The notes: generated by a model from the sequence alone, not told the origin. A stretch of 64,000 nucleotides of DNA from Oculina patagonica (GCF_052425735.1 NC_135769.1:15376001-15440000); one strand, 5' to 3'. Counted from the first letter of the stretch, positions 7,485-63,438 are shown. Numbers and translations: made by a program.

Positions 7485-9488
7485 TCAAATAACCGTTCTT
7501 GCTCTCTCTTGGTGCCTCTCCTGTAGGCCACGGAAGTTCTTTTCCCAGTTTTTGCGGAAGGCTTTGAATTCCTCTTCCATGGCAAGGACCTCTGCGCTTT
7601 GAGCGGCCATGAGTCGCTCTGTATGCTCGCTGCAGTTTGATGGTATGCCCTTGTGATGGTCATGATCACCTTCTTCTTTGCCAATCTTAGTCGTGGACAG
7701 ATCAAGTTTGGCATTTTGTTCTTCTCCTAGTAAATTAACATAGAGCAAAAAGTCTTAATCAAATAGGTTTTAAAGCTTTTTTTTGTCTCAAGTACGGTTC
7801 CGTGATAGATCTTTTGCTTTTGTCTGATATTTATGGTACATTTTTGCCTTGTGCCCTGTTCTTAAAAGAGAATGACAAGTTGAATATGGGGTTTTAAGCA
7901 TGAAGATATAACAGCAAACTGATCCTTAAAATGAAGAAGAAGTTTTTGGTTGCTGTTCCTTACCTGGACTGGTTTGCAGATTGTGTTCCTTTTGTGTCCG
8001 TGGGTAATATTGCCAGAAAAGGCCAACAGCTAAAGCGATCATAAACAAACCAAACATGCCGTAAACAGTGTAACCAAACAGGCTGCCCTTAAAATAATCC
8101 GCACCAGAGCTGGAGTTGTCACCGCCATACTGAAATAGAACAACAACAAATTTTGTACACAAATCGAATGTAAACAAAGGTATAATTCAAAGATCGTGTG
8201 ATATTTTAATCTTGAGCAACCGTCAAAAAACGTCCAGGAAATGACTCACGAAAACAACGCAGACAAATCACCAAAACGCCATAAGTCCCCCCCCCCCAAA
8301 AAAAAAAAAAAAAAAGAATCGTAAGGAATCCTTGTCACTCTTTTCGTTTAGTACCCCTTTGATGTCTAATAGGTAGTGAAATCTTTTCGAAGTTGCTCGA
8401 AATTCTCTACAAACTTAAATCCTAAGACAGGTCTAGGTTGATTGTATTTTAATTCCAGACTGTGATACTGACTCCCAGCTTTTCCTGTTATGGCAACTAC
8501 TTAACAAACAGTGACAGCTTGGAGTGAGATCAAAAGCGCAGGCATTTATGATACCGCTTGGGGACAGATGCAGAACTGCAGAAAATCTGCAAGCATTAGA
8601 GAATGTGAAGATGGAAAGAAATGTCGTTATATAAAGGGTCCTTTTTCCCAAACAATATGACTGAATATTTACGTGCTCTCCGTAGCAGGTGCCAGGCTTT
8701 TTTAAATTTAGCCATTTAAAAAAACTTGCTAACAAATATTTTCTCATGTAAGCTGGTTATCAAACCTGTTTTGCATTGATGTACTTTTCCAAAATCGCGT
8801 GTATTTCCAGCTGATGGTTGTTATGGTAACTCAGGAAGCACTTCCTTATGGCCTCTGTGCCCATGGGTAACACCGCTCCGTAGATAACAGGCTCATTGAG
8901 GACGGTTGCCACATACAGCTTGTACTCATCATAGTATGCGCTGTGCTGTGGAGTGCTGAAGATATCCACCAGGGCTATCCGGGTTTCGCCGCTTTGAACA
9001 CTCTTGTACAATTCATCGTAACTTCGTTTTACTAAAATGCAAAAGAGATTAAATGAGCCTAATAACCTTAAAGATATGAATTCACGAGCAAACCAACTAG
9101 TAATTTGGGTTGCCACGTTGAACGAATGAGTCAGCTGTATTCTTGTACACTTATTAAAAACGTAAAAGTGTACTACAAATTAACGAGGAACACGCCTACT
9201 TTATAGTAAAACACACGTTATTTCTTAAAGGATAAAACGAAAATGTTCCAGATTATATGACGAAATCAAACGTCAAAAAAAAAACATGTTCACAGAATCA
9301 GAAAAAAAAATTGACACGGAGTCGGTAACAAGATCACAACATGTGAACTCTAAGGAACGTACCATGAACTTCAGCGTTTTGTAAAATGGCTACTTGCTGC
9401 TCAGCGGAGCCATTCATAACTGCGACCTGGAACCAGAAGAAGAGAGAAAGTTTGGAAGGCCCCACGCCACCTTTTGTGTGGGCCCCTG

Positions 9489-9542
<54 letters not shown>

Positions 9543-12292
9543 AATTCGTTCGGTGCTGAAAGGCAACAGTCACTATATTCTGTCACGTCACTCGGCCCAA
9601 ACTCAGGACACACGGTGTAATTTTGCGGCTCAACGACCGTACCGCGTGTCTTGGCCAACCCCTAAAAAAAAGGATCGCCTTCAACTGTAGGACATGTTAC
9701 ACAAGGCGATTTTCCTAGCAACTTCCAACGCAATAAACGTTGTGGTTGTTGAATAAAGAAAAGTTGAACTATCCTCTGCTTTCTGTTACGTCGCGAGGCA
9801 AGTTGGTGTGTGACATGTCAATCGCAACTTGTAACGCACATTTGTTGAAATGAGCCAATCAGAGAGCGTTCTTCAATTGCGGGAGATTTGAAGATGATGA
9901 TTTCACGCGACATCCCCTCTGTAGCTTGAAATATTTTTCAGTCGCATCGTTGCGTGTTGCAAGGAAAATTGCTTCGTATAACATTTATCTGTAATAACAT
10001 TGTACACAATGGCCTAGCACAATTATTAGCCGTTTTCTGCCTTCTGACGGCCGGGTTTGTTACATTTTCCAAATTTTCTACCCTGTGAACAAAAACGCTA
10101 ACACCTGCGGTTTACTTATTGTTTTTGACAGCTTTAGTGATCTGGCTACCGTCGCAATTTTGTTTTCGTAGCTTGTAAACTCTCGCCGCAGCTATGCGCG
10201 ACATTTTGCAGCATGTCTGATTGAAAGGGCTCGGCAAACTAGAAATGTATGTTTACCGGCATTCCGTAAATGTTGTTAACTTGCTCGAGACTGTTACTGC
10301 TGAGTGAAGCGGTGATCATACCCATATAGATAGCGAGTATAACAAGACCGACATTAATCCACACCACACCAAACAGACGACCACCAACACTGCGAGGAAC
10401 CTTGTCACCGTAGCTAAACAAATAAAATACAATGAAGTCAAACTAACGTGCGTTCTGTTTACGTAACATAATGGTAACAAGTTTGTAACGAGGCGTGGAT
10501 TTTAAATTACATTACAGAAGACTGGGTTTTCTTTATCTGTGTAAAATGGCGAAAGTGTTTCTGTAGAGTTTTATGAAGAATAGAGAGTGGAGCAAGATAC
10601 GGTATTCTATGTTACTGGCTGATTCCTTTAAAAAACACTCATCCAACATTCTTAACAAACCGGTTTACAAGGCTTCACAGCGTGCGTTTTTACAGGCTGT
10701 CGCCATATAAGGGGTTAGTGTGACGATGAGACTGTATCCATTGGATCGATACTGAGTTTAATTGATAATTTTAATTGTGAATTTATAACCGTAATCATAA
10801 TGTTTATGATAAAAAGAAGGGAAAATAAATCGAAAAAATCAGACTGGATGAGCCAGGTTATTTCGAACCTTTTACCGAGCTCATCTAAGAGCGCTTCGCG
10901 AGGAGATTAAATACAAGACCATTTACATGCATGAACCATAAAACGTCAAATGGAAGAAAAATAAATCCTCAATCAACGATCCAGGGAGATTTTGCAATCA
11001 ACTATCAATGGCGGATGTCAACGGGTCCAGTGGCTAAATTTTTAGTAATTGTCAACTGACAAAATGCTCAATATTGGATCGACAAACCACCGCCTACTGA
11101 ATATCTTACGTCATGACCGATCGCACAGAAATTCATCATAATGGTATTACCGACTGAGGTTTTCCTCAGCAAGGTACCGTATTATGATCGTCTCAAAAGC
11201 AGTTCAACAAACTCAAGGCTTGTATTATCTCTTTAGAGACACACTTACAGAATATGGACGCATACACGAAGTGATACATACCCAACCGTTGTCATAGTAA
11301 CAGCAGCCCACCAGACAGCTTCAAAGACTCCACTAGGGAAGAACTCGGGGAATTCTTCAGTGTTTGAACGATAGTCCTACGTGAAAAAAAAAATCGACTT
11401 ACTTTGTTTTTGGCAGTTGAATTGCCAGTAAATTGCATGTAAACTTCCTTCAGAAAGTGACAATTTGAAATAAAATTTCTTTGAAGAGAAAAGGCACAGA
11501 AATAAATTCCTTATAAAGTATAGTAAAACAGCGCAGAGAAAGGAAATAGTTTAATACTCTCGCAAGTTCGTGAACTCTGCGACAGCAGTTTTTGAGTCAC
11601 TAAAGGCCATTTCGTTGTGAGAGACAGTCTATTAACTTTTTTAGGTACGTAACAGAATTACAACTGAAAAACAAACAACAATTAACAGAACTCTTAAGCT
11701 ACACCACGCGATTAAATCCGCTGCACTAAACTGAATTAAACTAAAAACTAAACTAAACTTAAAACTGGCTGAAGCGAATAAATCCTCTTACCAAAGCCCA
11801 CATAACAATTCCACTGAGCGATAACGACATCCCGATGAAGATTAAAATAGGCCAAGAATCCAAAATCGCAGCCATCAGTTCTTCTCCCGGGATACTTTGT
11901 TGTGCAATGAGGGCAATCCCTGGCGAATCAATTAAACCAAGAAAAGGGTGAAGAAATATCGATTCCTCTCGGCCGACTCTCCGCCCCACTGGAATTATAA
12001 CCTCCGTTGAGTGATCGTTGATCGTTGCTCTCAGTGCTGCTGGATATTCGATGAGTTTTGCCGAGATGCTAGCGCTTGTTTTACAGCACGCTTTAAAGAC
12101 GATGCGAAGGATTTCCGGCAAAGCGCCGTCAATTTTGCTGTCTCCCGTGCCCTTGAAAATATACGGCTTTTGTTCCCAGTAAACCAGAGAAAACGCAGTC
12201 CCATTATCACATGCATTTTGGAAGCTAGATGGCAGACCTTTTGTCGGTAAACTGACAAAAACTGCAAGAGCTATAAAGGTAGAAAAACTCAT
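7485..12292 (-). CDS. Gene A: GluR0/AvGluR1-like ionotropic receptor with a K+ selectivity filter (putative ligand-gated K+ channel), about 496 aa, 7 coding exons
   Basis: Manual GT-AG splicing gives one continuous frame: exons 12292-11792, 11376-11282, 10413-10257, 9426-9363, 9031-8766, 8129-7964, 7726-7485 (1491 nt). Signal peptide MSFSTFIALAVFVSL; S1-like lobe (QKPYIF...IDGALPEIL); M1 WPILIFIGMSLSLSGIVMWAL; pore AVWWAAVTMTTVG|YGDKVPRSVGGR; M3; S2-like lobe (VAVMNGS...IALVD...YGAVL); M4 FGYTVYGMFGLFMIALAVGLFW; helical tail. Confidence 0.88.
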
Positions 12293-13553
12293 CACAGCGC
12301 TCAGGGAACACACTATTACATTCCGTAAGACTTCCAAACCGCGACGATTGTAAATCCAAGTTATTAGCGCTCAAAGGTTTAAATTATTAATAAAGACATT
12401 TTTAAATCACCCCGGTTCCCTTTATGGCCGCCAATAAATTTTCTTTCTATTTGTGTTAAACTAGATAAATAGTTTGTCGTGAATAGTTCGAATAAACATT
12501 ATTTCCACTTTTATCATGCAAGCCAAAAATAATTACTGAGAGATAATTAATCAAGTTATTTTTTTAAGAGATTTTTAGACTGCTTTGAAAAATTTGTTAT
12601 CTCAATGATCATGATTTAGCAAGTTCATTTAGTTTAGTGTTATTTTAAAATGATTAAATTTGATATGATATTTTGGTTTGTTTTTAAAAATAAACACCTT
12701 ACAAATCCTAGCGAAACAAAAGATAATCTTATTTTTAAAAGATTTAATAGAATATTCATTTCTGGAATGGTTGTGGATAGAGTATCTTCCTTTGTTTCAA
12801 TTTTTGCTTAATTATTGGCAATCTTTTTTGAATAGAGCAAATTGTTTTGTTAAATACGTTATCGAATTGAAATAATAACACAAACCAAAGTTTGTATAAA
12901 TATGTGTTGCTAGCAGCTACTAAAGTCTCCCTAATGAACATTGAATAATCAAACACTTCGTTAACTTCCTTGCTCAAAAAGAGGGAAATGATTACCCGTA
13001 ACTTTTCGTAACGTCTAGAATCACGTTTAATTAAGTACTGAACAATTTCGCGACCCAACCTCAACAACAGCTAGAGCTAAATATTATTTTCCTTTCAATT
13101 CTAGAACTTGGAAACAATTCATTAAATATTAATGCTTCAGATTAACTGCCAATTAAAAATGAGTATAATTGACCATAATGCCTTGTTGCATTGGAACAGT
13201 TATAATCATAAAGCTCATCAAACAGACTCTCTTGGGATCTGCCATCTAACAGTGGGTAAACCGACAAGATATCTCCGTTTCTCGACTTGAAGCTATGATA
13301 CAAACAAAAGAAGATATTTTAGTAACGCTGCGTTCCTTTGCAGGAACCAGGGCAGAAACTTCGCCACAATAATTGTTCAAGACGTTATCACTGCGCAAGC
13401 AGCAACTAACTACACAAACTCAATTTATAAGTGTAGAATTACGGACGTACTTTTCACTTGCTTATATTGTTCTGTACAGGATTTCTTCTTTCAAATTTTA
13501 TTATCAAGTAATTGTCTAACAGCGTCGTTATTGCACCGGTGAAACTTGTGATC
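12293..13553. promoter_or_regulatory. Probable bidirectional promoter / 5' UTR region between the two channel genes
   Basis: 1.26-kb AT-rich interval between divergent ATGs at 12292 (-) and 13554 (+). The function is inferred from the arrangement only. Confidence 0.45.
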
Positions 13554-16500
13554 ATGGTTAGAAATACGAAACTGTATTTCATGGTGATATTTTTGTTTAT
13601 AAACAATGCTCGCCTGGCGTACTCGGTGAGTGTCGACCACAAGTGCAGCAACGGAGAGCAGATGACTGTGTTATGGTGGAGCCAAGAGCCTTATATCTTC
13701 ACCCCAGAAGAACATGACCACGAGGACGAACACAATGAAGCAAAAACCGGGGGAGACTTGCCATCATTAGAAGGAATGTTTCCAGTTATCTTACGCCAAG
13801 TTATCAGGGGCTGTTGTCATAGCAACACGACTGTTAACTATACAAAGATTCCTGAGGGTCCCGCTAGCCTTGATAAACTTTTAGCCGAAAATAGCTTTGA
13901 TGCAATAATGCCCGTGGGAGCGAAGGTGGGAGCCGAGACCGTGCGTCGATTCCCCTTCGTCGGGGTGCTTGAGTCCCCAGGGGTAGCAGTTCTTATCAAG
14001 GGGAATGTGTCCGGGACTCAGCTGCTGCTGTCTGTACTTCAAGGCTGGCCTATACTCGTGTTTATTCTCATCTCAGCGACCCTAGCTGGAGTTGTTATCT
14101 GGTTGGTGGTAAGTGGAGATAATTAATGAAGCTTCTATAGAAGTGTATATAAAGGGCGCGTTTTTTACCCACAATTCTGGTTGTGGGTTAATGGTTGGTA
14201 CAGAATGCTAGGAATAATTCGGATTGCCTGCATTAAAAAACACCCATTACCGTAACCGCACACTTCTGCCAACCCTGTGTAGAACTTGCACTCTTTTATG
14301 CTCTTACGACTCTTGTTGTCGTTGTCTTCTCGACACTTCCGGAACGAAATGTAAGGCACTTCCACCTGTTCTCGGAGTTCGCTGCCGACGGAGAGCAGCC
14401 ATTTTTCTTCATCGTCGGCGGCAATCATTTGCCAAATTGCCTTTTTTGTACGAATAATCTTTGATAAAAGCCTCGTGCTTCTGAAACAATAAAATTAGTC
14501 GTCAAATTAGAAGCAATGTTTCATTGTGTCCAAAAGTGTAACCTAATTTTTTCTACGGTAGGGACGTATTTGAATCCGCAGCGCTTATCTCGCCGTCCAC
14601 CGTCTTGTATTTTCATTCACAATATTCTGTTCATTCTGCCCCTTTAAGTAGAATGGACGGAATGGCGTTCTATTCCGGAATAAGAATGCGGAATAGAAAA
14701 ACGCGCTCATTTCACATTCTGACCATTCTCGTTCCAGAATTGTGAATAAAGAAAGCGCTCCAAAACTCTTAGAAAAGCGCGGTACGTGTTACCTGAGTTC
14801 TGGGGTTGGAGCCAGACCTGGGCTATTGTCTTGTTGTTCTCATAGGCAAGATACTTTTAAGTTTAAACTCTTCATAACCTCTCTCCACCCAGCAGTATAA
14901 ATGGGTACTGCAAGGACAACCTGAAAAAATGCTGAATTACCCAGTGATAGCTCGTCTATGCCGTTCGCCATTAACAAAGCACTGGCACTCGGTTGCGAAT
15001 TCCGCCAGCTACGCAGGCTATTCAGTGATGGAATGACATTCTCAAAGCAACACAAAGCTTAAGGATGCCAACCAACGTGGTCGGCTGATCCAAACAGAAT
15101 ATGACCTAATGTTAAACAATAGTATGTTATTCAGTTGGTGGGCGCCATCCAATTGCACAGTTTAAAAACCTTATTGCTCGGTCACCAATTTTCGAGTACA
15201 AGCGGGGGAAAATCTCACTTCTTACTAATTTTGACTTCACGCTTGATTTGGGACATATCTTTTGCGTTCACACTAAATTGTAATTGACGGGGTGACTGAC
15301 AGAAGGGATACCAAAACCGTGAACACTTTTATTAGACTTTGAAAGAGAAAGCAGAGAAATAGTTACACACATTATTCGCAAAAAATAACCTATTGGCTCC
15401 ACCACTGTCCATTTGTTTATATTACTTGTAGTTTAAACTGTCATTCTGCAGGAATTTGCATGTCCAAGATAAATATTAATTGTGTTCACGGTTTCCTGGT
15501 GCACCTTGTCAAAGGGTCATGTAAGAGTGTTCTGGGAAAATCTCTAAAGCGATGAGAGATCGAGGGAAGCCTAAAGCATAATAAAAATGACAATAACACT
15601 GCAAAATGGAGACAGATTTTAAAATTCAAGACTTGGCGATAAGGCGCTCTATTTTCGATTTCTTTCGTTAAACATTGCCATGCCATTGTACAACTAGAGG
15701 ACAACTATTAACATGATACTTACAGGCCTTTGGTTATAAAAAACTCCAAGCAGCACTGAAAGTCAGAAATATTAATTTTACAGGTGTTTTAAATTTCAAC
15801 CCACAGGAGCGCAAGGAAAACACTGACCAGTTTCCCGCGTCATTTTCACATGGTGTGTTTGAGGGATTCTGGTGGGCTTTTATCACCATGACAACCGTTG
15901 GGTAAGTGCAACATTTAGATTCACAGCGGGATTCATAAGGGCTAGTGCTGTACAAGGATTGGAAAATTGAACAGCCTGGTCGATTTAAGAGGTAGCTTCC
16001 TGCGCAGGCGCTCTTTGGGCTCGTAACGCGTTGTGTGACGAGACCAAAGAGCTTCTGCGCATTGACAGTTTCAAGAGTTCAGTGGTGAGATGGGAAAATG
16101 TGAGACGCGCAGAAGTGGTGGCGGGTTTTATTGTGGCACAACTGTATTCCGTTGCAGAACATTTGGGACACTTTTTCACTGAAATAATTTAATTAATTCA
16201 CTTGAGTTCGTTTCAACCAAAGCCTTCATAAGGTACAGCATACATTTGTTTCGTACGATTCTCGTCCCCAGATATACTTTTTGAGTGTTTTTTTTTGTAC
16301 CGTTATAAGCTCTCGTTTCGTCAACCACGTAACCAAAATGAACAACAGCTCTGGCAAGGAGATTGGTCATGCGCGGTGGAGTGGTTGCACGAAACATTTT
16401 ATTTTCGTTTTTTTTCTTCGAATCAGAGAAGGATTTTCTTAGCAAACAGGTTAAGGTTTTTCCTGAGACAAATAAATAAAGCAATGTTCAAGACTCATGG

Positions 16501-22500: not shown

Positions 22501-24036
22501 AAACATTCATCCTCGGTGATTATAACTCGTAAAGCCATGACGACAAATCAGACTTAGGCAGAGTTTGCAGTGAGCGGCTGGAAATATTAGACTAACTTCA
22601 TTCAGTTAAAAGCAGTCTTGGTAGCCTTAAGTTTGTTATAAGGCAAAAGGCTCGAGAATTAAAATTGTTCCAAAGAACGTGAATCAAGCGTGTGAATTAA
22701 GCAGCTTAGAAGCAGCCTTCGCTGTTTATTTTCAATATAAATCCGTGTTAGAATGTCAGTCTATTCTTTATGACTTTAGATTTATTTTGTCAGCTTTGCA
22801 TCCATAAAACTCATCATTATTTGATGAAGGGTGAGTGTTATTTACTTACTTCTTAAAAACAGATTTAAATTATCTTTGAATGCGAAATCAGTTTGTTCGA
22901 TTTGAAATATACTTACAGAGTGATTACAAGGGATGTCTTGTGATAAAATTTTAATTCAGTTTGCTTTCTTGTTTTTAATTGCCAGCTTGGTTTAGTTATA
23001 TTCATGTTGGTAGGTTGAAATCTTTTTGAAACTCGTTAGCTGCGGCCAAAGTTCATCTAAAATGGCAAGTCAGTTTCTGTTCACACAGCAAGTTTTAATT
23101 ATAAAAACCTGATTGTTGTTTTCCATGAGCGCTGCTGGTTCATCAGTAATGAATTGTCAGGGAGCGGTTCTTGATCTGTTCAGTTGTGCTGGTAGACAAC
23201 AAATAAGTAAAAAACTTAATAAATAAGTAGCTTGATTCCTTCGCAAGATAATTCATCTTTCAAAACTTGCATGAATATCTCCTCAAATTATTTAGCTTTT
23301 TGTTCTTTTTCAGTTGCCTCGTTAACAACAAATACATCTAATTTTTCTCCATGATGTCAGACATCATTTATATTCAGGCCAGTGAGACACAAGGCAGCAC
23401 ATCTAATCAAGGTCTCAAATTTATTTCAGCTGGACTTTACAATACAATATTTATATTCTGGTAAATAAGCAGCAAGAATATTAATTGATACTTGTTTTCC
23501 GTAAGTGCTGATGTTTTGTCAGAAATGATTTTTTAGCAAGTGTTCCTCTCTTTTTATTCAGTTACGCTGGTGCAATACATTAAATACGTTGATTACACCA
23601 GTAGAAACTTCCTACGGTTTTAAAAGAAAACTGAATTGCTACACAATTGTTCGTGAAATATTAAGACCACATTCTTCAATAATCATTAGCCTTCTTCCCA
23701 AAACACATCGCCGAAACCTCTTAGACTTGTTCAGTTTTTTTATTTGGTAGTATTCTCTGCATTTAGTTAGTCAGTTAACCAGTAAATTAGATAGTTCAGT
23801 TAGACAGTTAGTTAGTCACTTAGTTAAGTTAGTTAATGAGTTAGTTTTTCATTTAAAGATTTTAATGATTCTTAGTTTTTATTTCCATTTTTACAGCTCA
23901 GCTATTTTATGTTAGTATTTCCTTTTATCACTGATGTAAATGTTTTAAGTAAATTTCACTTTTTAATAATATTTTTACTGTAAAGCGCCATGAGCCATGG
24001 ATATGGCGCTATATAAATCTTTTATTATTATTATTA

Positions 24037-24080
<44 letters not shown>

Positions 24081-27000: not shown

Positions 27001-30000
27001 CTGGTAAAGAATTGGATTTCTTTGTGCGTAATCTTTAAGCCATCCCCTTTTTTCTCTGTTTGCGCGTCACCGACCAGATTTCGCGTTTAAAAAAAAAAAA
27101 AATTATACAGAAGGAAGAAGGCATGACACTAATAATGTTTCATCCTTTACGCTGTTCTGTTTGAGTAACCACGACGCGATCCTCCCCATTGCCGCCATGT
27201 GACTGTAACCATGCCCCAGGCCCACGGACATAGCGAGGACCGGGCCTCCTAGTTCCAGACTCCCCTTTTTTTTTGTTTTTTTTTTATCCGACCGACCGAC
27301 CCAAAATCAGAAAACACATACGACGATAAACGAAAAAAAAAAAGGGGATGGCCTAAGAGGAACCCACGCATTTTGGATGCTTGTGATCTTTAATATTATT
27401 CACGCCATTACCTCAACTTCCGGCAATGCTCTGATCCTAGCTGCCCTTTACAAAGAGTCGTCCCTTCATCCACCCTCTAAGATCTTGTTGCGTTCCCTGG
27501 CAGTTACTGATTTGTGCGTGGGGATTCTCTTGGAGCGGCTCTTTGTCGCAAAATTGTTACAAATGCTTAACTTAAAAATGTATACAGTCAACTCTCTCTA
27601 AGACGGACACCTTCGGGACCGGCCGCAGCTGTCCGTCTTAGAGAGGTGTCCGCTCTGTAGAAAGTCGAGGTAACATGACACCAGTAATTCTGAGATAATA
27701 AAAGCTAAACCTTTGCACAATGTAACAAACCTTTGCTAACTGCAACAAGACTAAAATAATAAAAGGACCGTATTTGCTTTTTAGAGCAAGAATTGAGAGC
27801 TTCTACTAACTGTTATACTGTAAGAAGAGAACGACCTCTTAAGTGTCCATATACGTAAGCAAAGAAGTAATCCGTTAAAGCGTCATTGATTGTGGTTAGA
27901 AAGCTTGGTACTTGATACACGTATCCTTAGGGCACTGACTAACTTTGCGAAGATGGAAAGTATTTTCACTAATACAACATGATAAAAAAACACTTCTCAA
28001 GTGTCCGTTAATGATTTCAAAGTGTCCGTTGTCCGTCTTAGAGAGGTGTCCGTTTTATAAGGAGTTTGATAACAGTATAATGGCTGAAAAACGGCAGGGA
28101 CCATCACCAAGTGTCCGTCTTATGGAGGTGTCCGTCTTATAGAGGTGTCCGTTAAGAGAGAGTTGACTGTAAATACAAAAACAGCCGGAAAGGACAGGAG
28201 ACAGAAACCAAAACCTAGCTGGTGAATCTGCTGATACTTAAATATTTAGACCAAGGCTAAAATATTTTGCCTGCTAAATCATTGTTATAGTTAATGTAAA
28301 TAGGAATTTGCGAAAACAGTATTGCTTAGCTGTTGCAATTAAGCATTGTCAGGTTGAATGGCACATTGTTATGGTTATCTGTGAAAAGAGATTGTTGTAA
28401 ACATAAATTATGTAGAACAAAACAACGAACATAGACATATAAGACTCACCAACATATGATAGTTTTATTTCGCACCTTCAGTAAGCTTTAATATTAAAAT
28501 AATTTTTTTATCAGGTAAAATTATCTGAATTATTTGACCGCACACAGTCACAACGAAACGAATGTTGAGATGAATATTGCGACAATTTATTTCGTCTAAG
28601 CCGTTAACAATGAATGAAGAGTGCAGAGCAAAAACTTACTTAAATCCCTATCGTACGTGACCTCGCATAAAGACTATACACAATAAAACTGACTGACATT
28701 CAATTTTAAATTTAGTGATGGAATTAAAAGAAAAGTATATATTTATTTATAATATAATATAAAGTCGTTGTATAAATTAAAACTGTGACGCTTTTCTGTG
28801 GTAAAAAACAACACAGTAGTAATTCAGTTACAATATAAATTTACTTATGACAACAAAGGGACAGCAGGAAATAAGAGTAAAAATCAAGCTCACACCACTT
28901 AATTAAAAATAAAAACAAAAAATCTAATAAACCTGGTTGTTCACATCAAGCAAATAATATAAATATAACTCCATTTTATCACTGACAAATATAATGCATC
29001 CGCTCTAAGCCAATAAGAGTTAAGCAATTGACCGTTTTATGATGAGCCCCATAATTATAACTTGGTTGGCATTGAATGATAACATCTGCCATGCAGTCCT
29101 TTCAAAAAATATAATACAGATTGCATCGTGACTAAAACTTTTAATTTCAGATCCTATTGGAAATTTTAAATTAATACAATTACCGACACACAAACACGTC
29201 AATATGATGACATTAAATGAATTTCAAACAAGCTGATGTTTTTAGACATGCGCAGTTTCTAGCTACCTTGCCAAGGGTATAAATATTGGAGACATTTGAA
29301 GTCGCATCTCAAATATAAACATCCCCAATCAGTGCATGAAGCTGCCACAGGATATCATCCGCGGAGACTGTTTAGCAGTGAAATAGGGTTTACAATACTG
29401 AACATGGAAGATACTGAGCAAGCTGGAAGCCGACGTACACAAAATTATTGTACGGCACCTTTAAAAGGAACCAGTGCATTATGGTTTCTTGTAGCCTCGA
29501 ATGTTTTTCTCACAATCACGTCAACGTTAGGTAATACTGTTATCCTAGCTGCCCTTCACAAGGAGTCGTCCCTTCATTCACCTTCAAAGATCTTGTTACG
29601 TTCACTGGCGCTCACTGATTTCTTGGTTGGCATTCTCACGGAGCCATTTTTTATCATATTTTTCATGACAATCGAACATGAGAACTTGAATCTTTGCTAT
29701 GACCTTATAACTGCCGGTATTTTTGTAGGTTTACTGTTGTGTTCGGTATCTTTGCTCACACTGACAGCAATAAGCGTGGACAGACTTCTCGCCCTGTTAC
29801 TGGGCATGAGATACAGAGAAGTGGTTACTTCTAAACGAGTGCTGATGATTGTGATATGTTTTTGGATTTTGAGTATTGGCCTTATTACCTCAGGTTTATG
29901 GATCGGTGATATCACTTTTTATTATATCTCCTTATCTGTTCCATTATGCCTAGTAGTCTCAACCTGCTGTTATACAAAGATTTACCTAAAGCTCCTTCAT

Positions 30001-33000
30001 CATCAAGCTCAAATACACGTTCACCAAGGACAACCAAACGGACATGAGCCATTGAACATAGCGCGATACAGAAAGACAGTGTCCAGTGCATTGTGGGTAC
30101 AGTTTTCAGTACCTGTATGCTACCTTCCAACTGGTATAGTTACAGGTTTGATGGCGACCAGAGGAATGCTTCCATCTCTTATTGTCGCTTGGATGTTTTC
30201 ATCAACGCTAACATTGTTTAACTCAACACTAAACCCGATGCTATATTGTTGGAAAATTAAGGAAGTAAGACGAGCGGCCATTAACACAATTAAACAGCTA
30301 ACTTGTTGTGGATCAAGTTAAACGAACCTAAATCCACAGAATCTAAAGTACTAGTTTGACATAAGCGGCGGAGCAGGGGGAGCAGGGTCGCTGTAGCCCC
30401 CCCCCCCCAAAAAAAAAAAAACGTTGTTAGCGAAGCATAAAATTGGTTTATCAAGATATTCAGTCTAGTGATTTTTTCACAAATCGTTTCATTATATTAG
30501 GATCGTGCTTGGCGAAATAATATGGTGAAGGACTATCAAAGAAACTCCTCTCCCAGAAACGCTACTAAGAGAGGTCCAACAGCTGGTAGAATTGTATTTG
30601 ACATTGCCTGTGGCATCGGCGATGGAGCAGAAAACAAAATTCTGTTACTAATTACGATATAAATTGTCTTTTTACGCCATAATTAAAAAAATACGTAAAA
30701 AGCAGGTAATACGAATAAAAAACAAGCTGACACAACTTATTGCGGTTTTCAGTGAAATGCGAACTTTGAATTTTAAATTCCAAAAAACGTTTGGTTTTTC
30801 CCCCCCGTCATTTATATTTTTGGGGAAAACAAAGGAACAAAAAAAAAAAAAAAAAAAAAAAATGGATAAAAATTTTACAAATCAAATGGAGAAATTTTTT
30901 TTCCCCGTAAAACTCTCCCCCGGGGGGCTCCTATAATTTTACAGCAAAAAAAAAAAAATTTTTTTTTTTTTTATTTTTTAAAAAAATAATTTAAAAAGAA
31001 AGAAACCCTAATACCTGTTTATTTTTCTTTCAAGCAAACAAAATTCATTCATTTCACATTTACAAAGAATTTCAAGCTAACAGGAAATAAATGTCAGTTA
31101 GATAAAAAGACTCGTCAAACACTCCATAAACTCATCAGTACTGAATACACTCCAAAGGGAAATATTAATTAATGACCAGTATGCCAATGTTTTTTTACGG
31201 AGTGTTACAAGCACCACAGCTTAGGTAATTGGTTTTGATTACATTGTTTAGCGCCATGGCAAAGTTGATTGGACCGTTCAGTAAACTTATTATAAACAAA
31301 TAAGAATCAAAGTCACTCGACGCTGCTTTAACAGCGTGTTTCGTTTGTGGTTCGAGGGAAGAGGGTCCTGAAGGGAGGGTACCAAATCCCATTTCCCAGC
31401 CCAAGTTTTGCCCAAATCCCATTTCCCAGCCTATTTTTTGTCTAAATCCCAGTCCCAGCAGTGAAATTCCCAGTGCGTGGAAAATCTGGTCTCAAGTGCA
31501 TTATATCTGTGTTGTTTTGATTGTCCTAAACGTAGCCTACTCTCTGAACTTTCCCTTCGGTGCCCAATATAGGGATTGAACCCAGGCGCAGGAAGAGCGA
31601 GTCCAGAATAACTTGTATGCGCATGCTTAGAAATCCGTCGCCCCCCACCCCCCCACCTTACAAAAAAGGGGGGTGACCACCCGGGGGTGACCAAACCATA
31701 TTCCACAGCACCTTTGGACACGCACGCGCGCAGACGATAAATTAAAAAAGTTGTAATTGTGGATTTAGTACCTATTTTGCATAGTTCAGTTTTTCATTTA
31801 AGCGAGCTATTTTTACCTTAGCGCACACACGCTACATGTAAGAAATGCCACACCTCTCTGTCGTTTTTCATTGGTTTGTTTTTAAAAGCATGCACATGCA
31901 AGTTATCCTGGACTTTCTTTTCGCACCTGGGTCGCAGAAGGGATAGTTTAACGACTTGACTAATACGACTATCCAAAATCATGCTCTGCTAGTTATCATC
32001 ACTAATATTGTTGAGAATATCACTTTTCATTTGTTCGTTTGTCTTGTAGAGAATAATAGAATTTTTTGAAGCTTTAACTAAAGCTATCAAGTTTTTATCC
32101 CGTACCTACCACTACCCTGACTGACAACAACTTGCTGTCACTTCTTTTAAATATTCCATTTGTGCTGATCCTCAGTCATAGCTGTTCCGTTGAGTAACTT
32201 AATCACTTACACGAAAATTGATCAAGACTTCATGGACACTCGTGCAGTGCGGTCGTTTCGTTTCAGAATTTTCAGCGTCAGTTTGAACTATTTTTTGCCG
32301 GACTTTAAGAACATAACATTATATAAGGTAGCGCAAAATATGCAGGTTTAGTCATGTACTGATGCGCTTCCCATTCCCATTTTTTGTTTCCGAATCCCAG
32401 TCCCAGTGACCTAAATCCCATTTTCCCAGTGAAAAAATAGGCAAATCCCAGTTCCCATTTTACCCCTTCAGGACCCTCAGGGAATAGAAGTGTGTTCATG
32501 GAAATGTTATAAAGAAACCTTATGAAAATATCGCTGAACAAATCATACACTGAACATGATTTCTCGGCCCTGAGCATGCTCCCGGCCCCCAATCCGGTCC
32601 CCCCCAATCCGGCCCCCAATCCGGCCCCCAATCCTAAACACAATCTAAGTCCAGTAACCTGAAATTTTTTTTAGATAATCTCATAATACAATGGAATTCC
32701 GATTTCTAGCATCCTCGTTTTCCCGAACCGACCGAAAACTCGAACCAAAAGTCTTTTCCTTGGATTTGTTTCACTCAGTCGAACACCGCAGTTTTAACTC
32801 GATTCTCGAACCAATTTTTGTCTCCAAGAAGGTTCGAGATATCGAGATTCCACTGTAGTTTCTGCCTTTTCACAACTAAAATAGCAGCGGCAATGGACTT
32901 TTAACGCAAGGAGTTCAATGAGAAAAGTTATTTAGTGAAAATTAGTATTAGTAAATTCTATCTATCGGTTCAACTTCCCACCGGGTATATCTTGGGTGGC

Positions 33001-36000
33001 TTTGGTTAAACTCCCGTCAAGGGAAGGGGTGAAAAACACATAAGTGGAGAAGGGGTTGTTTAGGTGCTGGACTAGCTAGTAGAAAGATGTTTCACTTAAC
33101 TATATATGGAATCATAAACAGAATTTTTCAATTATTATATTTTTACAGATATGGAGACAAAGCACCCAAAACAATTGCTGGTAAACTGCTGGGGCTGGTG
33201 TGGATGTTGGCAGGACTTATCATCATCACCATGTTTATCAGCATCATCACCACGTCATTAACTTCAGTCAGTCTAGAAGGACGAACTAGCCTTAGGGGGG
33301 TCATGGTAGGTAGGCACTTCAGTCAGTCTAGAAGGACGAACTAGCCTTAGGGGGGTCATGGTAGGTAGGAACTCAGTGCGGAAACACAAGCTCCAAATGT
33401 TGCAGTCTTGCCTTGTTACCTTTTTACTGAAATGAACTAGAATAATCTGTGATCAGTTCTAAGATCTGTTTCTTCGTTTCCCTAGGAATATACCATTCCC
33501 TGCCAAGAAATTAAATATGAAACACGAAACATTTTTCCTATATTTTTCCTAAACACTGAAAATAATGCAAGAAAACACGATACAAAAGAGTTCGTCAAAA
33601 GGAGAGCGGCGAAACATGAGTTGGACAATCTCCACACCAGTAAATTTGTCATTTTCGCATGCCAAGTGCCGTATAATATTATTTCAACCTCAGTGATGTA
33701 AGCATTTCATTAATAAAATCGGAGCCAGTCGTTAGTCAATTACCTTAAATGCAGAGGCGGTGGTGTGTTTTGAAACAAGGCGGAGCAACGTACTCCAAGC
33801 CAAGTGCATACCCCCCCACCCCGGGGGGGGGGAGGGACACCACCGTACTCAAATTTCCCAAAATGTCTTTAACAGTGTCCGGTGTAGCCTCCCACGCAGT
33901 CGTTCTTAGGGGCGATCGCGTTAGGAGGAGTGTAACGCGATCGCCCCTAAGAACGACTGCGTGGGAGGCTATGTCCGGTGTGTCGGTAATCGATTTGTGA
34001 CAATGCATAACTAGGCAGTTCACTGAGACAATCCTGCTTTATGGTGCTTTTTGAGTTGTTCTTTAGACGTCAGAGGGCAGAAAATGTACGCTGGTTCTTC
34101 CTGGACATAAGCGAGAGTTTCGTTGAAAGTCCCACACCATATATTATCCCGCCAAGCACGATCCTGATAAAATGATTTGTGTCTAGACAAACCAATTTTA
34201 TGCTGCGCTAGCGATACTTGCGACACTGAAATGTGTGAGGGCTAAGTCCCCCACCCCCTGCTCCGCCGCCTGTGAAATTAAATGGCAATAGTCGATAAGG
34301 AGGTAGACTAAAGCGATTTATTTGTATGACATGAATGGCAGGTGTCAGCTGTCAATCATAGTGAGGAACACAAGCTCGGGATTCGTGAAATTGCCACAGT
34401 AGAAGGTTAGTCAGATCTCAGTATTATTTTTCACATGTGTTTGCTTCCTTAGTTTGACATGAATTATCAAATAAAAGAAATTCGCGTATCTGATTGGTTC
34501 TTGTATTTTTTCTATTTGACAATTAGTCTACGAGCCGAAGTTTTCTTTGAGCGATTATTCAATAACCGAGCTACTGCGCGCGTTGTGATTGGTTGATGTC
34601 TGTCATCTATTAAAGTACAGACGCACAGATGCCGTCACTGCGTGGTGTGACTCACGCGCCAACCTCGTAGTTTTTTCAGCAAAAACTCGCAGGGCCACAA
34701 CAAAACAAAAACGTTCGGCTTAATTATAAATCAACAGTGACAAACAGGTACCGTTCACCTTTCGAAACATTTATCTGGACTAAACAAGCTTGAAGTAGAC
34801 AGTGAATGGTTCGAGAAATTATCGAAATCTGTATGAAAGTGTTTGTCCGATGTTGAACAGGAGACAAATGAATGGCGGTTGAACGCTTAGGTTAAAGCTT
34901 AAACAGCTATCCAAATGGAAGTAAGGCTAGTTTTTTCGATGATGGTTCAATTTTCCATTAATTTTCCATTTTCCATTATTCTGTTTATTTAACCGGTTTA
35001 ACAGTGGTTCAACGGAATGATTCAACGCGTCACACTTAATAAAGCTCTCCTCTTTGCATATCTTTATTCTAATACAGTCAACATTAAATATCAATTCATT
35101 CGTTTCAAAAAATGTTTGCATGAAAATTTGGTGATGCACGCATTAAACTAACATCACTGGACCAGTTAATAAGTTTTTCTATATTCCCATGACTTATCTT
35201 CAGAAAAGTTATGAATATGCTTTAGACCCTCGTCAAAAAGGTATCTTAAATTTAACAAATTTGGAATTGTAACTGAAGATTTTTATGTTACCCAGCTCTG
35301 GTCAGCAGTGAAGAAGTGTTTCAATATGTACTTGACCGTCGCGTGGAAGGCGCTTTAGTGGATGTACACGGACTTAAGCATCATATCAACGCCCTTACTC
35401 AACATAACATACAGGTGAACAAATGCCCCATTGATTCGTTTAATCGACTTTCCTTAGAGCGGTTTTCACTTGAGTGTCGAAAGTAATTCGCGTTTGCATT
35501 GGTTTTGCATTAGTACGCTCAGTGATTGGTTTAAAACTCTCACGCCACTTTCTCAGTCAATCGGAAGTAAAACCAAAACCAATCGTGACTCGCTTGCGCA
35601 CGTTTTGCCGCGCTTCTTGCCGGCTACATGTATTTGCTTCGAGTTTTGATTGGTTTAATGGATTGTCTCTGTTCTTTGTGATCGGCTAGAGTGATTACTT
35701 TGATTTTGGTTTTACGACACTCAATTGAAAACTGCTCTATATGGTCATAACTTCCAGTACACATGACCACTGCGTTCCTTGTTGATAGGTCGGCAATATT
35801 CTTAGCAGTCACGTGGCGTATGGAGCAATTCTTGCTGTCAACGCCAGCCGCTTTGTGAGATGCTTTAGAGAATACATGCAAACCGAAGAGCAATGGCTTT
35901 ATCATATTCTGGCAGAAAACACGGGAACCACAAAGGTCAGTACAAGACGCCTTGCAGCATTCTTGTTTCCAGAGTCTTCGTTTCGTTTTATGGGCATATA

Positions 36001-36904
36001 CTGTATTTTTATAAACAATAGTTTTTATTTTCATAAATTTTCATTAGTCAAAATCTTAGAAGGTAGACGCAGTAGACGCATCGGAGAGGAAGGGGGGGGG
36101 GGGGGGGGGTCACCAGAAAGCGAGGGATTTTGAAAAACATTCAGGTCGAGTGTTGAGTGTTGGATACTGAACTTGGTAAAAGTCTGTTTTGTGTAGCGAC
36201 AGAAATGTCTGTGTTTTCTGGTCCCGCAGGAGAAGATAAGCGTTGCAGAGGATTATTTTGGCAGCGGAGGAATATTCAGTATCGCAGTGTACTGCGGACT
36301 CTCGCTGTTTGTGCTGCTCATTGCTGCAGGGATCGGCTGGGAGATGTACAGAAGACGGAAACTTAAAACCAAAAAACAAAGTACCGGTGAAGGTAAGATT
36401 GAGTTCGATGCCTGACTCATCAATAATCTAAAAGATCAGCGATAACAAGAATGGACGACCTCTCCCCAAATCATTGATTTTCTGAAAGGAAACAGTTGCA
36501 TTAACATTTTTTGTCTTGGTATTTTTTGTCTTGAATGTTCCACTGACTATATGTGACATTCTACGCAAACATCAAATAATCTTTAGCTGGAGGAGAAATA
36601 TATACTTAATGTGATTATACTGTTTATTTATAATTCAGCGGCCAATGTAGAAACTGCCACCATTGTCCTGGAAGACTTAGAGACCCGCCCGACCCCGCGG
36701 CTATCGTTTGGTCAGGGCCCTTCAGAGCAGCTGGTCTCCAAACACAGCATGGAGATCATGAGCATGGACGAAGAACTCAACGATTTTCGGAAAAGTTGGC
36801 AGGATAGGCGTTCAAGAATGTTAGAGCGACATCAACGAGAACAAGCAAGTGGTGGTATTAATGGCGAACGTTCCAGCTCCTTAACTACAGTAGAAGAACC
36901 ATGA
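13554..36904 (+). CDS. Gene B: paralogous GluR0/AvGluR1-like ionotropic receptor with a K+ selectivity filter, about 521 aa, 8 coding exons
   Basis: Exons 13554-14108, 15807-15901, 33149-33305, 34342-34405, 35296-35414, 35789-35935, 36230-36392, 36639-36904 (1566 nt); all introns GT-AG and in frame. Internal exon lengths 95, 157, 64 and 119+147=266 match gene A exactly. Pore GFWWAFITMTTVG|YGDKAPKTIAGK; M4 IFSIAVYCGLSLFVLLIAAGIGW. Confidence 0.88.
17851..18786 (+). CDS. Intronless class A GPCR of a second, more distant subfamily (adenosine/melanocortin-receptor-like), 311 aa; nested in intron 2 of gene B
   Basis: LAVSD, SVDRFLAI, CYSP, NSSLNPIIYCW motifs; intact ORF; AATAAA at about 18842. 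Confidence 0.92.
   Translation: MKQSSCEAVPHYFPLISEVEDLYWAYIVNCILNNFLSYTAIMLNIVTLHVIRKTSSLPKTLKTLLLSLAVSDVGVGLLAQPLYTSLLVKWFQQTNPSCSNYKVFLVIMLLFSLASLFGVVAVSVDRFLAIHFHLRYRELVTYKRVVAVVMLIWVLSAFFSLTTLWVAPGIRSIFLSVSVVVLLLFTTMVYIRIYLAVRRHKNQIQALQVNEAAQTTEMTNFASLVKSAVGIFYVYLVFFVCYSPFFICLAAIKVNGPSIPLKRFSLFSWTLVFLNSSLNPIIYCWKMRHVRHAVMDILRNMPRNRNRGTSQ
20410..20790 (+). mobile_element. 3' fragment of an RTE-clade non-LTR retrotransposon
   Basis: Translates to LQVFVNKC...SNVELL...KRRKWRWIGHTLR...ALHYHPQGKRKVGRP...W...VDALC, the typical RTE ORF C-terminus; contains a stop. Confidence 0.8.
21544..22461 (-). CDS. Intronless class A GPCR paralog, 305 aa; nested antisense in intron 2 of gene B
   Basis: Intact ORF with LALTD, SVDRLL, CYLP, NSTLNPVLY. 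Confidence 0.92.
   Translation of the reverse strand: MEADYHDAQDEPFCTARLLIGSHALWFCIIAFHIFLGITSMLSNTVILVALHKESSLHPPSKILLRSLALTDFCVGMLLEPLFVIFLMTVVNKSLNLCREIVVFTLFAGQVLCCVSLFTLTAISVDRLLALLLGMRYRQVVTFKRVLFSVIWFWILSIGFATVVFWNKKITACYVAIVVLLCIIVSTYCYIKIYLKLLHHQAQIQEHVHQGQPNGHEPLNIARYRKTVSSALWIQVSVLACYLPMVLTSVSIAVEGLTSSVFFAWTLSSTLVFFNSTLNPVLYCWKIREVRSSTMNTLRQIWCCL
23560..24080 (+). mobile_element. Probable 3' end of a decayed LINE (L2/CR1-like) ending in a (TTA)n tail
   Basis: TGTAAAGCGCCATG...ATATGGCGCTATATAAAT stem-loop directly followed by about 19 TTA units (24022-24080). The 5' boundary is uncertain. Confidence 0.45.
24171..25330 (-). pseudogene. GPCR pseudogene with an internal deletion and a SINE insertion
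   Basis: TM1-TM3 intact (25330-24945); a frameshifting deletion removes ICL2-TM4 at about 24943; TM5-TM7 at 24939-24611; a SINE sits inside NSTLNP; the remainder NSTLNPIVYCWKIRGVRRAV lies at 24314-24171. Confidence 0.9.
24315..24610 (+). mobile_element. Full-length tRNA-derived SINE
   Basis: Pol III A box (TGGCCTAATGG) and B box (GGTTCGAGGCC); 3' tail TTTACCTTTTTACCTT; exact 14-bp TSD TTCAGAGTTGAGTT (24301-24314 and 24611-24624). Confidence 0.92.
26564..26873. mobile_element. MITE with about 38-bp terminal inverted repeats
   Basis: TTATTGCGGTTTTCAGTGAAATGCGAACTCTGAAATTC and its exact reverse complement at the other end; a second, corrupted copy starts at about 30737. Confidence 0.8.
27358..27560 (+). 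pseudogene. GPCR gene fragment (TM1-TM2 only)
   Basis: [59 protein letters not shown]; similarity ends just before the MITE at 27585. Confidence 0.85.
27585..28169. mobile_element. Tc1/mariner-pogo-type MITE
   Basis: TIR CAGTCAACTCTCTC(T)TAA...TTAAGAGAGAGTTGACTG with flanking TA on both sides; subterminal TGTCCGTCTTAGAGAGG repeats. Confidence 0.85.
29404..30321 (+). CDS. Intronless class A GPCR paralog, 305 aa; nested on the same strand in intron 2 of gene B
   Basis: The real start is probably the ATG at 29404 (AACATGG, MEDTEQ...) rather than the upstream TTG of the ORF track; all family motifs are intact (NSTLNPMLY). Confidence 0.9.
   Translation: MEDTEQAGSRRTQNYCTAPLKGTSALWFLVASNVFLTITSTLGNTVILAALHKESSLHSPSKILLRSLALTDFLVGILTEPFFIIFFMTIEHENLNLCYDLITAGIFVGLLLCSVSLLTLTAISVDRLLALLLGMRYREVVTSKRVLMIVICFWILSIGLITSGLWIGDITFYYISLSVPLCLVVSTCCYTKIYLKLLHHQAQIHVHQGQPNGHEPLNIARYRKTVSSALWVQFSVPVCYLPTGIVTGLMATRGMLPSLIVAWMFSSTLTLFNSTLNPMLYCWKIKEVRRAAINTIKQLTCCGSS
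31361..32478. mobile_element. Non-autonomous TIR element with a 6-bp TSD, containing a nested MITE-like segment (about 31532-31962)
   Basis: 15-bp TIR GAGGGTCCTGAAGGG...CCCTTCAGGACCCTC; AGGGAA duplicated at 31355-31360 and 32479-32484; subterminal AATCCCATTTCCCAG-type repeats near both ends. Confidence 0.8.
32582..32633. repeat. 12-bp tandem repeat (CCGGCCCCCAAT), about 4 units
   Basis: Directly visible in the sequence; one unit is imperfect. Confidence 0.85.
33261..33369 (+). repeat. Perfect 54-bp tandem duplication of the 3' end of gene B exon 3 including its splice donor
   Basis: ACTTCAGTCAGTCTAGAAGGACGAACTAGCCTTAGGGGGGTCATGGTAGGTAGG at 33261-33314 and 33316-33369. Confidence 0.95.
33885..33971. 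mobile_element. 87-bp hairpin MITE with a 9-bp TSD
   Basis: Perfect 39-bp inverted arms (TAGCCTCCCACGCAGTCG...) around a 9-nt loop; TGTCCGGTG duplicated at 33876-33884 and 33972-33980. Confidence 0.9.
35455..35739. mobile_element. MITE in intron 5 of gene B
   Basis: Imperfect about 28-bp TIR TAGAGCGGTTTTCACTTGAGTGTCG...CGACACTCAATTGAAAACTGCTCTA; internal GATTGG repeats. Confidence 0.8.

Positions 36905-52605: not shown

Positions 52606-63438
<10,833 letters not shown>

Follow-up and report, generated by a model that had tools for sequence, protein, structure and literature searches.

A 64,000-nucleotide stretch of the genome of the coral Oculina patagonica (GCF_052425735.1, NC_135769.1:15376001-15440000; hereafter the window) carries, between positions 7485 and 36904, a head-to-head pair of spliced genes whose products combine a two-lobed extracellular clamshell with the selectivity filter of a K+ channel. 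Gene A, on the minus strand, and gene B, on the plus strand, probably encode anciently diverged subunits of a metazoan GluR0-type family of ligand-gated, K+-selective, hyperpolarising receptor-channels that has expanded in cnidarians. Each product comprises a signal peptide, a first ligand-binding lobe (S1), the membrane helix M1, the pore, M3, a second lobe (S2), M4 and a cytosolic helix, with no amino-terminal domain; translations and a structure model agree on this order, which an earlier note, made from the DNA sequence alone, had proposed for two spliced genes of 496 and 521 amino acids. The motif positions and lengths given there were reproduced almost to the base. The family lies within the superfamily of GluR0 and the ionotropic glutamate receptors (iGluRs) and is apparently undescribed.

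A six-frame motif scan finds a pore helix ending in WWA..TMTTVG twice in the window, with TMTTVG at 11298-11281 on the minus strand and at 15885-15902 on the plus strand. The continuation, YGDK.P, is found in a separate downstream open frame in each case (10409, minus; 33153, plus), followed by the gate-region motifs IYMGMI (10331-10314, minus) and MFISII (33231-33248, plus). Because TMTTVG and YGDK.P sit in separate open frames, the filter is split by an intron in both genes, as the earlier note had stated, with TVG and YGD on different exons. The pair is made up of the following features.

Gene A, exon 1 (coding part): 11792..12292, minus strand; start codon, signal peptide, S1 lobe and M1 (translation, RNA)
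Gene A, exon 2: 11282..11376, minus strand; turret, pore helix (WW) and first half of the filter to TVG (RNA joints 11375 to 11791 and 10413 to 11282)
Gene A, exon 3: 10257..10413, minus strand; YGDKVP, M3 and gate region IYMGMITASLS (RNA joints in four runs)
Gene A, exon 4: 9363..9426, minus strand; S2 start with NGS-A-E motif (RNA joints 9031 to 9363 and 9424 to 10255)
Gene A, exon 5: 8766..9031, minus strand; main S2 lobe with conserved Asp (ALVD), YG and Cys (RNA, translation)
Gene A, exon 6: 7964..8129, minus strand; pre-M4 motif (ADYF) and M4 (RNA, translation)
Gene A, exon 7: 7457..7726 (7485-7726 in the assembly reading), minus strand; cytosolic tail with conserved helix (RNA, translation)
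Divergent intergenic region: 12293..13553, no strand; between the two start codons, containing both 5' untranslated regions (UTRs)
Gene B, exon 1: 13554..14108, plus strand; start codon at 13554 (public model start 13581), signal peptide, S1 lobe and M1
Gene B, exon 2: 15807..15901, plus strand; turret, pore helix and TVG (95 nt, gene A phase, AG/GT sites)
Gene B, intron 2: 15902..33148, plus strand; 17.2 kb between TVG and YGD, with five nested intronless rhodopsin-type G-protein-coupled receptor (GPCR) loci
Gene B, exon 3: 33149..33305, plus strand; YGDKAP, M3 and gate region MFISIITTSLT
Gene B, exon 4: 34342..34405, plus strand; S2 start with NHSEE motif (RNA joints 33304 to 34341 and 34403 to 35294)
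Gene B, exon 5: 35296..35414, plus strand; first part of S2 (RNA, translation)
Gene B, exon 6: 35789..35935, plus strand; second part of S2 (RNA, translation)
Gene B, exon 7: 36230..36392, plus strand; pre-M4 motif (AEDYFGSGGIF) and M4 (RNA, translation)
Gene B, exon 8: 36639..36904, plus strand; cytosolic tail with long conserved helix and stop codon (RNA, translation)

Gene A consists of seven exons and six GT..AG introns, as defined by RNA contigs over 7400-12400 whose ambiguous cut points were shifted to splice dinucleotides before exon limits were set. All of its exon joints are present in RNA contigs, in up to four public runs. Two of these contigs, one of 835 nt holding exons 1 to 4 and one of 1311 nt holding exons 2 to 7, together connect S1, the pore, M3, S2, M4 and the C-terminus, so that for gene A the expectation of a spliced, expressed transcript is borne out. 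The joint of exons 1 and 2 runs from 11791/11792 to 11375/11376, and the filter's Gly codon is divided by the intron between exons 2 and 3. The 64-nt exon 4 was located only through its RNA joints, and the 5' UTR extends past 12400, with contigs over 11784-12400. Read from the assembly, the joined exons translate to 496 amino acids, with a stop that ends at 7485. Relative to the assembly, however, base 7511 is absent from the gene A contigs of two runs (X5 and X6); without it the frame continues to a stop at 7457-7459 and yields 505 amino acids. The product then ends in ...ELDNFGYEM, as does the Stylophora orthologue, and the C-termini of gene A orthologues fit this frame. The length of 496 thus holds for the assembly and 505 for transcripts without base 7511, and because these transcripts end like the orthologues, the final seven residues of the shorter reading are probably not real. 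The extra base reflects either an error in the assembly or an allelic difference.

Gene B has eight exons, a joined translation of 521 amino acids and a stop that ends at 36904. Its residues 10-521 are 100% identical to a public protein, P0095 ('hypothetical protein ACROYT_G037640 [Oculina patagonica]'), which confirms the cnidarian host and whose model already crosses the 17.2-kb intron that divides TVG from YGD. The earlier claim that annotation misses these genes holds for gene A, the full-length protein of which was not found in the protein collection by sequence searches, but not for gene B, which is publicly annotated with equal exon structure. A 1575-nt RNA contig carries the joints of exons 3 to 8; exons 1 and 2 were set by paralogy with gene A, from the equal 95-nt exon 2, the phases and the AG/GT sites. 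RNA contigs display all gene A joints and those of gene B exons 3 to 8, but not directly the joint from 15901 to 33149, which we infer from the public model, the contig ends, the divided Gly codon, the exon order of orthologues and the lack of other family exons in the window rather than from a spanning contig. Gene B contigs align from precisely position 33148 onwards and extend 287 and 217 bases beyond it on the upstream side, the Gly codon is divided GG/A between exons 2 and 3, and the Pocillopora and Nematostella orthologues have equal exon order. Exons 5 and 6 correspond to the single 266-nt exon 5 of gene A. The intron between them is absent from gene A and from Nematostella, and its presence in Pocillopora indicates that it was gained in the scleractinian lineage. 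No further family exons were found within the window, including the interior of the 17.2-kb intron.

The extracellular halves were expected to form a type II periplasmic-binding-protein fold. Pfam searches with single S1 or S2 exons gave no matches, and the fold was therefore shown through a structure model. An AlphaFold2 model of P0095, built from a 95-sequence alignment, has a mean predicted local distance difference test score (pLDDT) of 85.4 and comprises a signal helix, S1 strands and helices (28-140), M1 (156-177), a pore helix (189-204), M3 (217-250), S2 (260-366), M4 (384-423) and a long helix at 452-495 (pLDDT about 90-96). S1 starts about 20 residues past the signal peptide, and neither A nor B has a LIVBP-like amino-terminal domain. 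When the model was compared with PDB and Swiss-Prot models by Foldseek, only iGluR chains were returned (AMPA, NMDA, kainate, delta and plant GLR); alignments to the ligand-binding and transmembrane domains (LBD-TMD) of AMPA and NMDA receptors cover about 440 columns, M4 included, at E values of 1e-13 to 1e-15. The template modelling (TM) scores are low because the angle between the two domains differs in the model. For the clamshell, an independent aligner ranked the Nostoc GluR0 ligand-binding core (2pyy) first among 48,161 chains (Z 21.8, root-mean-square deviation 2.5 A over 206 of 212 residues), and Synechocystis GluR0 (1iiw) third, at Z 21.3, among class-F amino-acid-binding proteins. 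Next, at Z 18-19, come the LBDs of ctenophore, AvGluR1 (18.7), NMDA and kainate receptors. The expected fold is thus supported, with the GluR0 core as the nearest known structure.

Profile searches tie the whole of this architecture to the bacterial proteins. When the animal family was aligned with 31 bacterial GluR0-like sequences, profile to profile, the match had a probability of 100 and an E value of 1.3e-51 and took in S1, the membrane part and S2, 295 columns in all. The Pfam model Ion_trans_2 is matched by 63/63 members and Lig_chan by 62/63, and gene A exon 3 alone matches both (E 5e-6 and 1.4e-5). The Lig_chan match covers profile positions of about 6-100 of 146, leaving the M4 part unmatched. 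The 31 bacterial relatives stop after S2; A, B and the animal relatives with complete C-termini continue into a pre-M4 motif (..DYF..G.IF), M4 and a cytosolic tail helix (L..QS.E...M..E...F...W......ERHQ).

The pore module shares 58-61% identity with those of bacterial GluR0-like proteins (100-107 bits), as compared with 52 bits at equal database size for Kv1.2, the best sequence match among solved structures. Pores of the Kv1-Kv4 channels are the best PDB sequence matches (E 3e-13), and no iGluR is among these matches. Because the bacterial GluR0-like pores score about twice as high, the Kv-like appearance of the pore reflects shared K+ pore ancestry and not a Kv insertion; shuffling of a Kv pore, that is, a Shaker-type origin, was rejected on these scores and on the homology that runs through both lobes. 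Both genes encode TTVGYGD, and the K+ signature TVGYG is intact as described, V-G-Y-G-D being invariant in 65 animal and 31 bacterial relatives. W198, W199, V207, G208, Y209, G210, D211, P214 and W226, which make up the WW cuff, V-G-Y-G-D, the following Pro and the M3 Trp, are invariant in all 95 aligned sequences. The statement that the iGluR gate motif SYTANLAAF is replaced applies to A and B themselves. Across the family, however, the consensus following M3 is F-T-A-x-x-T-x-x-L-T, equal to the bacterial F-T-A-x-I-T-x-S-L-T, and by its residues it is a visible counterpart of the iGluR Y-T-A-N-L-A-A-F-L-T.

A full HMMER scan with gene A exon 1, together with word-indexed searches, recovered hundreds of relatives. 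Full-length members of 430-600 amino acids occur in scleractinians, sea anemones, octocorals, hydrozoans and a scyphozoan. Further relatives are found in two bilaterians, the annelid Dimorphilus and the hemichordate Glandiceps, and many in transcriptome assemblies. Oculina itself has further paralogues (ACROYT_G010108, ACROYT_G010109 and LOC144643119). In public records these proteins appear as 'uncharacterized', as 'Potassium channel domain-containing protein' or under mistaken Kv names. Several clusters in the ESM Atlas, of 50-150 mostly cnidarian members each, show the same Pfam combination. The next-best matches are bacterial proteins of about 360 amino acids with SBP_bac_3, Lig_chan and Ion_trans_2, the GluR0 type. 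Some hydrozoan, scyphozoan and octocoral members carry CUB and Ig domains before S1 (P0102, P0103, P0106, P0224, P0229 and P0239), one has EGF repeats (P0220) and two have fn3 domains (P0110 and P0196); the position of the iGluR amino-terminal domain is therefore filled by unrelated modules in some members.

A maximum-likelihood tree of 335 columns (S1 to S2), unrooted and built from the 65 animal and 31 bacterial sequences with no iGluRs, divides animal from bacterial sequences by a branch with 100% support in the Shimodaira-Hasegawa-like approximate likelihood ratio test (SH-aLRT). The B orthologues are recovered in species order, the A clade is sister to the B clade plus octocoral sequences (98), many additional cnidarian paralogue clades are present, and the annelid and hemichordate sequences cluster together. 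On this sequence evidence, the family is an animal clade expanded in cnidarians and retained in annelid and hemichordate members. A and B, with 33% identity over about 500 residues, are old paralogues in a large family, in agreement with the native duplication proposed earlier. Bacterial contamination or recent transfer was ruled out by the GT..AG introns, the spliced RNA, animal monophyly and intron positions shared with the hemichordate.

These features suggest a mechanism. Each subunit would be secreted by its signal peptide and fold an S1 plus S2 clamshell of the class-F type II periplasmic-binding-protein kind, its chain interrupted by an inverted K+-channel module of M1, pore helix, TTVGYGD filter and M3. 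Four subunits, possibly as A/B heteromers, would build the pore. Binding of a small extracellular ligand would close the clamshell, the S1-M1 and M3-S2 linkers would pull the M3 bundle crossing open, and K+ efflux would hyperpolarise the cell. We infer by analogy with characterised relatives that the subunits assemble as tetramers and that the channel is ligand-gated, K+-selective and hyperpolarising. Coupling of such a clamshell to a K+ pore is physically plausible, since a synthetic fusion of an iGluR clamshell with a viral pore is a glutamate-gated K+ channel.

Several observations weigh against this proposal. A GYG filter alone is no guarantee of K+ selectivity, and both the A clade (Y/F-M-G) and the B clade (F-I-S) depart from the F-T-A consensus. 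The earlier note had named Ion_trans_2, Lig_chan and SBP_bac_3 as Pfam models to be expected; the first two are matched, but SBP_bac_3 and likewise Lig_chan-Glu_bd are matched by 0/63 members. In GluR0, iGluRs and amino-acid-binding proteins, the Arg of T-x-x-R-E holds the ligand alpha-carboxylate. In the bacterial relatives this S1 motif reads T-x-x-R-E...D-F, and in the animal family the Arg column is a gap or another residue. Gene A does have G-R-E-E at this site, but its orthologues carry L-E-K, R-E-E, K-I-K or H-G-G, and gene B carries G-A-E-T. As the Arg has no conserved counterpart, the clamshell may bind something unusual, or nothing. In lobe 2, a Ser/Thr is kept in 53/65 animal members and the S2 Asp, which binds the ligand alpha-amino group in relatives, is D/E in 60/65; acidic residues often follow the Ser (N-G-S-E-E, N-H-S-E-E; G-S-E-E). 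Because lobe 2 is often acidic and the carboxylate-binding Arg is not conserved, the ligand may not be a standard amino acid. Distinctive cysteines also mark the animal clamshell, a Cys-Cys in lobe 1 and a Cys in lobe 2, both found in at least 57/65 sequences. The lost Arg and the variable S1 loop, the failure of every amino-acid-binding Pfam model to match and the family-specific Cys residues would all suit a K+ channel whose clamshell no longer binds a small agonist and serves only in assembly, in docking a protein partner, as it does in delta receptors, or as a constitutive regulatory module, the pore being a leak or otherwise gated. We regard such a channel as unlikely, since the confident clamshell model can be overlaid at 2.5-3 A on ligand-bound GluR0 and on amino-acid-binding proteins, the ligand-contacting Asp and Ser/Thr of lobe 2 are conserved, and the family has many paralogue clades, as chemoreceptor families do.

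Other alternatives concern the pore and the origin of the family. HCN channels have a GYG-like filter and are weakly selective, so that the coral proteins could be ligand-gated but non-selective cation channels, hence excitatory. This seems quite improbable given that T-T-V-G-Y-G-D, the WW aromatic cuff and the following Asp are all invariant, that the pore shares about 60% identity with that of bacterial GluR0-like channels, and that GluR0, the founding member, is K+-selective (Chen et al. 1999, as cited in PMC12332018). That the genes are Kv channel fragments, or that gene B joins two unrelated half-genes, can be given almost no credence, although some relatives have been labelled by automatic annotation as, for example, 'Potassium voltage-gated channel subfamily B member 1, partial', Kv pores lead the PDB matches, and the joint of gene B exons 2 and 3 rests on indirect evidence. 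The Kv match is confined to about 95 residues of the pore; bacterial GluR0-like pores outscore it; and the parts before M1 and after M3 form a binding-protein fold. The Kv reading was ruled out because a single membrane helix precedes the pore and the 130 residues before it are the S1 lobe, not a voltage sensor. Both halves of gene B are united by the public model, by the orthologues P0094 and P0036 and by the divided Gly codon. The alternative of most substance, though still somewhat unlikely, is that these proteins are no iGluR intermediate but a separate GluR0-type side branch, inherited or anciently transferred from bacteria, that gained its signal peptide, M4 and tail on its own. Its pore and clamshell are by sequence much nearer to bacterial GluR0-like proteins than to iGluRs, no iGluR appears among the PDB sequence matches, and the M4 part of Lig_chan is unmatched. 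The grouping of the animal sequences apart from the 31 sampled bacterial ones at 100%, the introns shared by coral and hemichordate, which place an intron-bearing gene in the cnidarian-bilaterian ancestor, and an M4 located as in iGluRs in structural alignments speak against a side branch and are not decisive. The earlier placement 'between GluR0 and animal iGluRs' accordingly stands for architecture and for architecture only, the tree carrying no iGluRs.

The paired arrangement is itself old. When the window is compared with the Pocillopora damicornis locus, only coding exons are similar at the DNA level, and the similarity breaks off sharply at splice sites; it covers 11781-12188 around gene A exon 1, and 13584-14114 and 15804-15907 around gene B exons 1 and 2. 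A head-to-head pair of A-type and B-type genes also occurs in Pocillopora, in Nematostella (P0319 and P0036, on one contig) and in the octocoral Dendronephthya, and from this recurrence in three other anthozoans the pair is older than the anthozoan radiation. The Glandiceps member is encoded by a gene of 18 kb, located on a 29-Mb scaffold, and its first two introns lie at the coral positions, after M1 and between TVG and YGD; as these positions coincide, the gene was already intron-bearing in the cnidarian-bilaterian ancestor. The region at 12293..13553 is presumably a shared bidirectional promoter. Its retention across Anthozoa and the 33% identity of A and B fit co-expressed heteromer partners, which is only suggestive. 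A bolder proposal, which we put forward tentatively, is that the family is an overlooked ancient class of animal receptors, GluR0-type K+-selective M4-bearing channels without an amino-terminal domain, with many paralogues in cnidarians and survivors in a few bilaterians, that would mediate fast inhibitory (hyperpolarising) responses to extracellular ligands other than standard amino acids, with A and B as obligate heteromer partners held head-to-head on that shared promoter from before the anthozoan radiation.

Around the channel pair lie some eleven intronless GPCR loci of the rhodopsin type, about 300 amino acids long, that form an array (window 434-50656; Pfam 7tm_1, E 1e-10 to 1e-29). The 17.2-kb intron of gene B hosts five of them, on both strands; its orthologue in Pocillopora measures 6.3 kb and has a single nested GPCR, and that in Nematostella measures 0.4 kb and has none. 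At least three of the loci look truncated or broken.

434-1345, minus strand: GPCR locus 1
2735-3658, plus strand: GPCR locus 2
17851-18786, plus strand: GPCR locus 3
21544-22461, minus strand: GPCR locus 4
24607-25504, minus strand: GPCR locus 5, apparently truncated or broken
27209-27598, plus strand: GPCR locus 6, apparently truncated or broken
29296-30321, plus strand: GPCR locus 7
39155-39589, minus strand: GPCR locus 8, apparently truncated or broken
42607-43518, plus strand: GPCR locus 9
44911-45783, plus strand: GPCR locus 10
49727-50656, plus strand: GPCR locus 11

Two introns of gene B contain repeated or apparently repeated sequence. The intron within its S2-coding part (35415-35788) is mostly a very high-copy element with a repeat core at about 35454-35740, where summed contig depth is 1e4 to 1e5 in each of the four RNA runs and contigs with loose ends at 35454 and 35740 number in the hundreds. 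In intron 3, many RNA contigs with odd short joints cover 33792-34197 at a summed depth of 30-360; this looks like another transcribed repeat rather than an exon. Towards the end of the window, 58000-62000 differs markedly in composition from the remainder (G+C up to 0.48, GC skew +0.30, AT skew +0.29), and the open reading frames at 59378-59899 and 60289-60846, both on the minus strand, have no Pfam match.

Comparison with characterised proteins defines what is distinct about the coral family. It shares with GluR0 (Synechocystis 1ii5/1iiw; Nostoc 2pyy) and its bacterial relatives the order S1-M1-P-M3-S2, the lack of an amino-terminal domain and TTVGYGD, but differs in its introns and in the addition of M4, a helical tail in the cytosol and a signal peptide of eukaryotic kind. 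Its clamshell is so diverged as to go unrecognised by SBP_bac_3 and Lig_chan-Glu_bd, is without the conserved Arg and carries a distinctive Cys-Cys/Cys set. AvGluR1 (2011; LBD 4io2) is likewise an animal receptor with TXVGYG and M4. GluR0 and AvGluR1, the two characterised receptors with this filter, are reported as K+-selective in PMC11479355 and PMC12332018, and the latter source ascribes to AvGluR1 the full eukaryotic iGluR architecture, including an amino-terminal domain. AvGluR1, its full chain being compared by description, is amino-acid-gated and has that domain, whereas the coral proteins lack it and have a non-canonical ligand site. With the eukaryotic iGluRs at large (AMPA, kainate, delta, NMDA, epsilon, lambda and plant GLRs) the coral proteins share an LBD-TMD, M4 included, that aligns over about 440 columns, and a Lig_chan match; they differ in lacking the amino-terminal domain and SYTANLAAF, in having a K+ filter instead of a Q/R/N pore loop and in an identity of only about 15% in structural alignments. 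Shaker-type Kv channels have a nearly equal pore helix and filter (FWWA..TMTTVGYGD); unlike them, the coral proteins have no voltage sensor or T1, their membrane orientation is predicted to be inverted, as in iGluRs, and the similarity is limited to about 95 residues at half the GluR0-like strength. GluATCV, a fusion of the GluA1 LBD with a viral K+ pore (Schonrock et al. 2019), demonstrates that a clamshell of such fold can gate a K+-selective pore, as described in PMC12332018; it is engineered, whereas the coral family is natural. With M4, a tail and no canonical Arg site, the family is not a GluR0 proper, and with a K+ filter and no amino-terminal domain it is neither a canonical iGluR nor of the AvGluR1 type.

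The metazoan iGluR phylogeny of Ramos-Vicente et al. (2018) excluded sequences with <4 SYTANLAAF residues. IYMGMITASLS in gene A and MFISIITTSLT in gene B both fall short of at least 4/9, and the coral family was probably filtered out by this rule. A 2021 preprint describes an NTD-LBD-TMD-CTD plan (amino-terminal, ligand-binding, transmembrane and carboxy-terminal domains) as common to all eukaryotic iGluRs; a 2025 review still presents AvGluR1 as the presumed intermediate; and 2025 and 2026 cnidarian iGluR surveys contain no mention of K+-filter receptors. No published description of the family was found in the literature searched, most subscription journals lying outside its reach.

In the accepted picture, the bacterial K+-selective, M4-less GluR0 and a single rotifer receptor, AvGluR1, the only animal link, lead to the non-selective iGluRs. 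To these is now added a whole family of different plan, present in corals, anemones, octocorals, hydrozoans, jellyfish, an annelid and a hemichordate. If the proposed function is correct, these proteins would be ligand-gated K+ channels of natural origin, would belong to a rare class among fast inhibitory receptors and would offer natural scaffolds for chemogenetic silencing tools. The gain of M4 and loss of K+ selectivity in iGluRs, and inhibitory ionotropic signalling in cnidarians, would then become testable.

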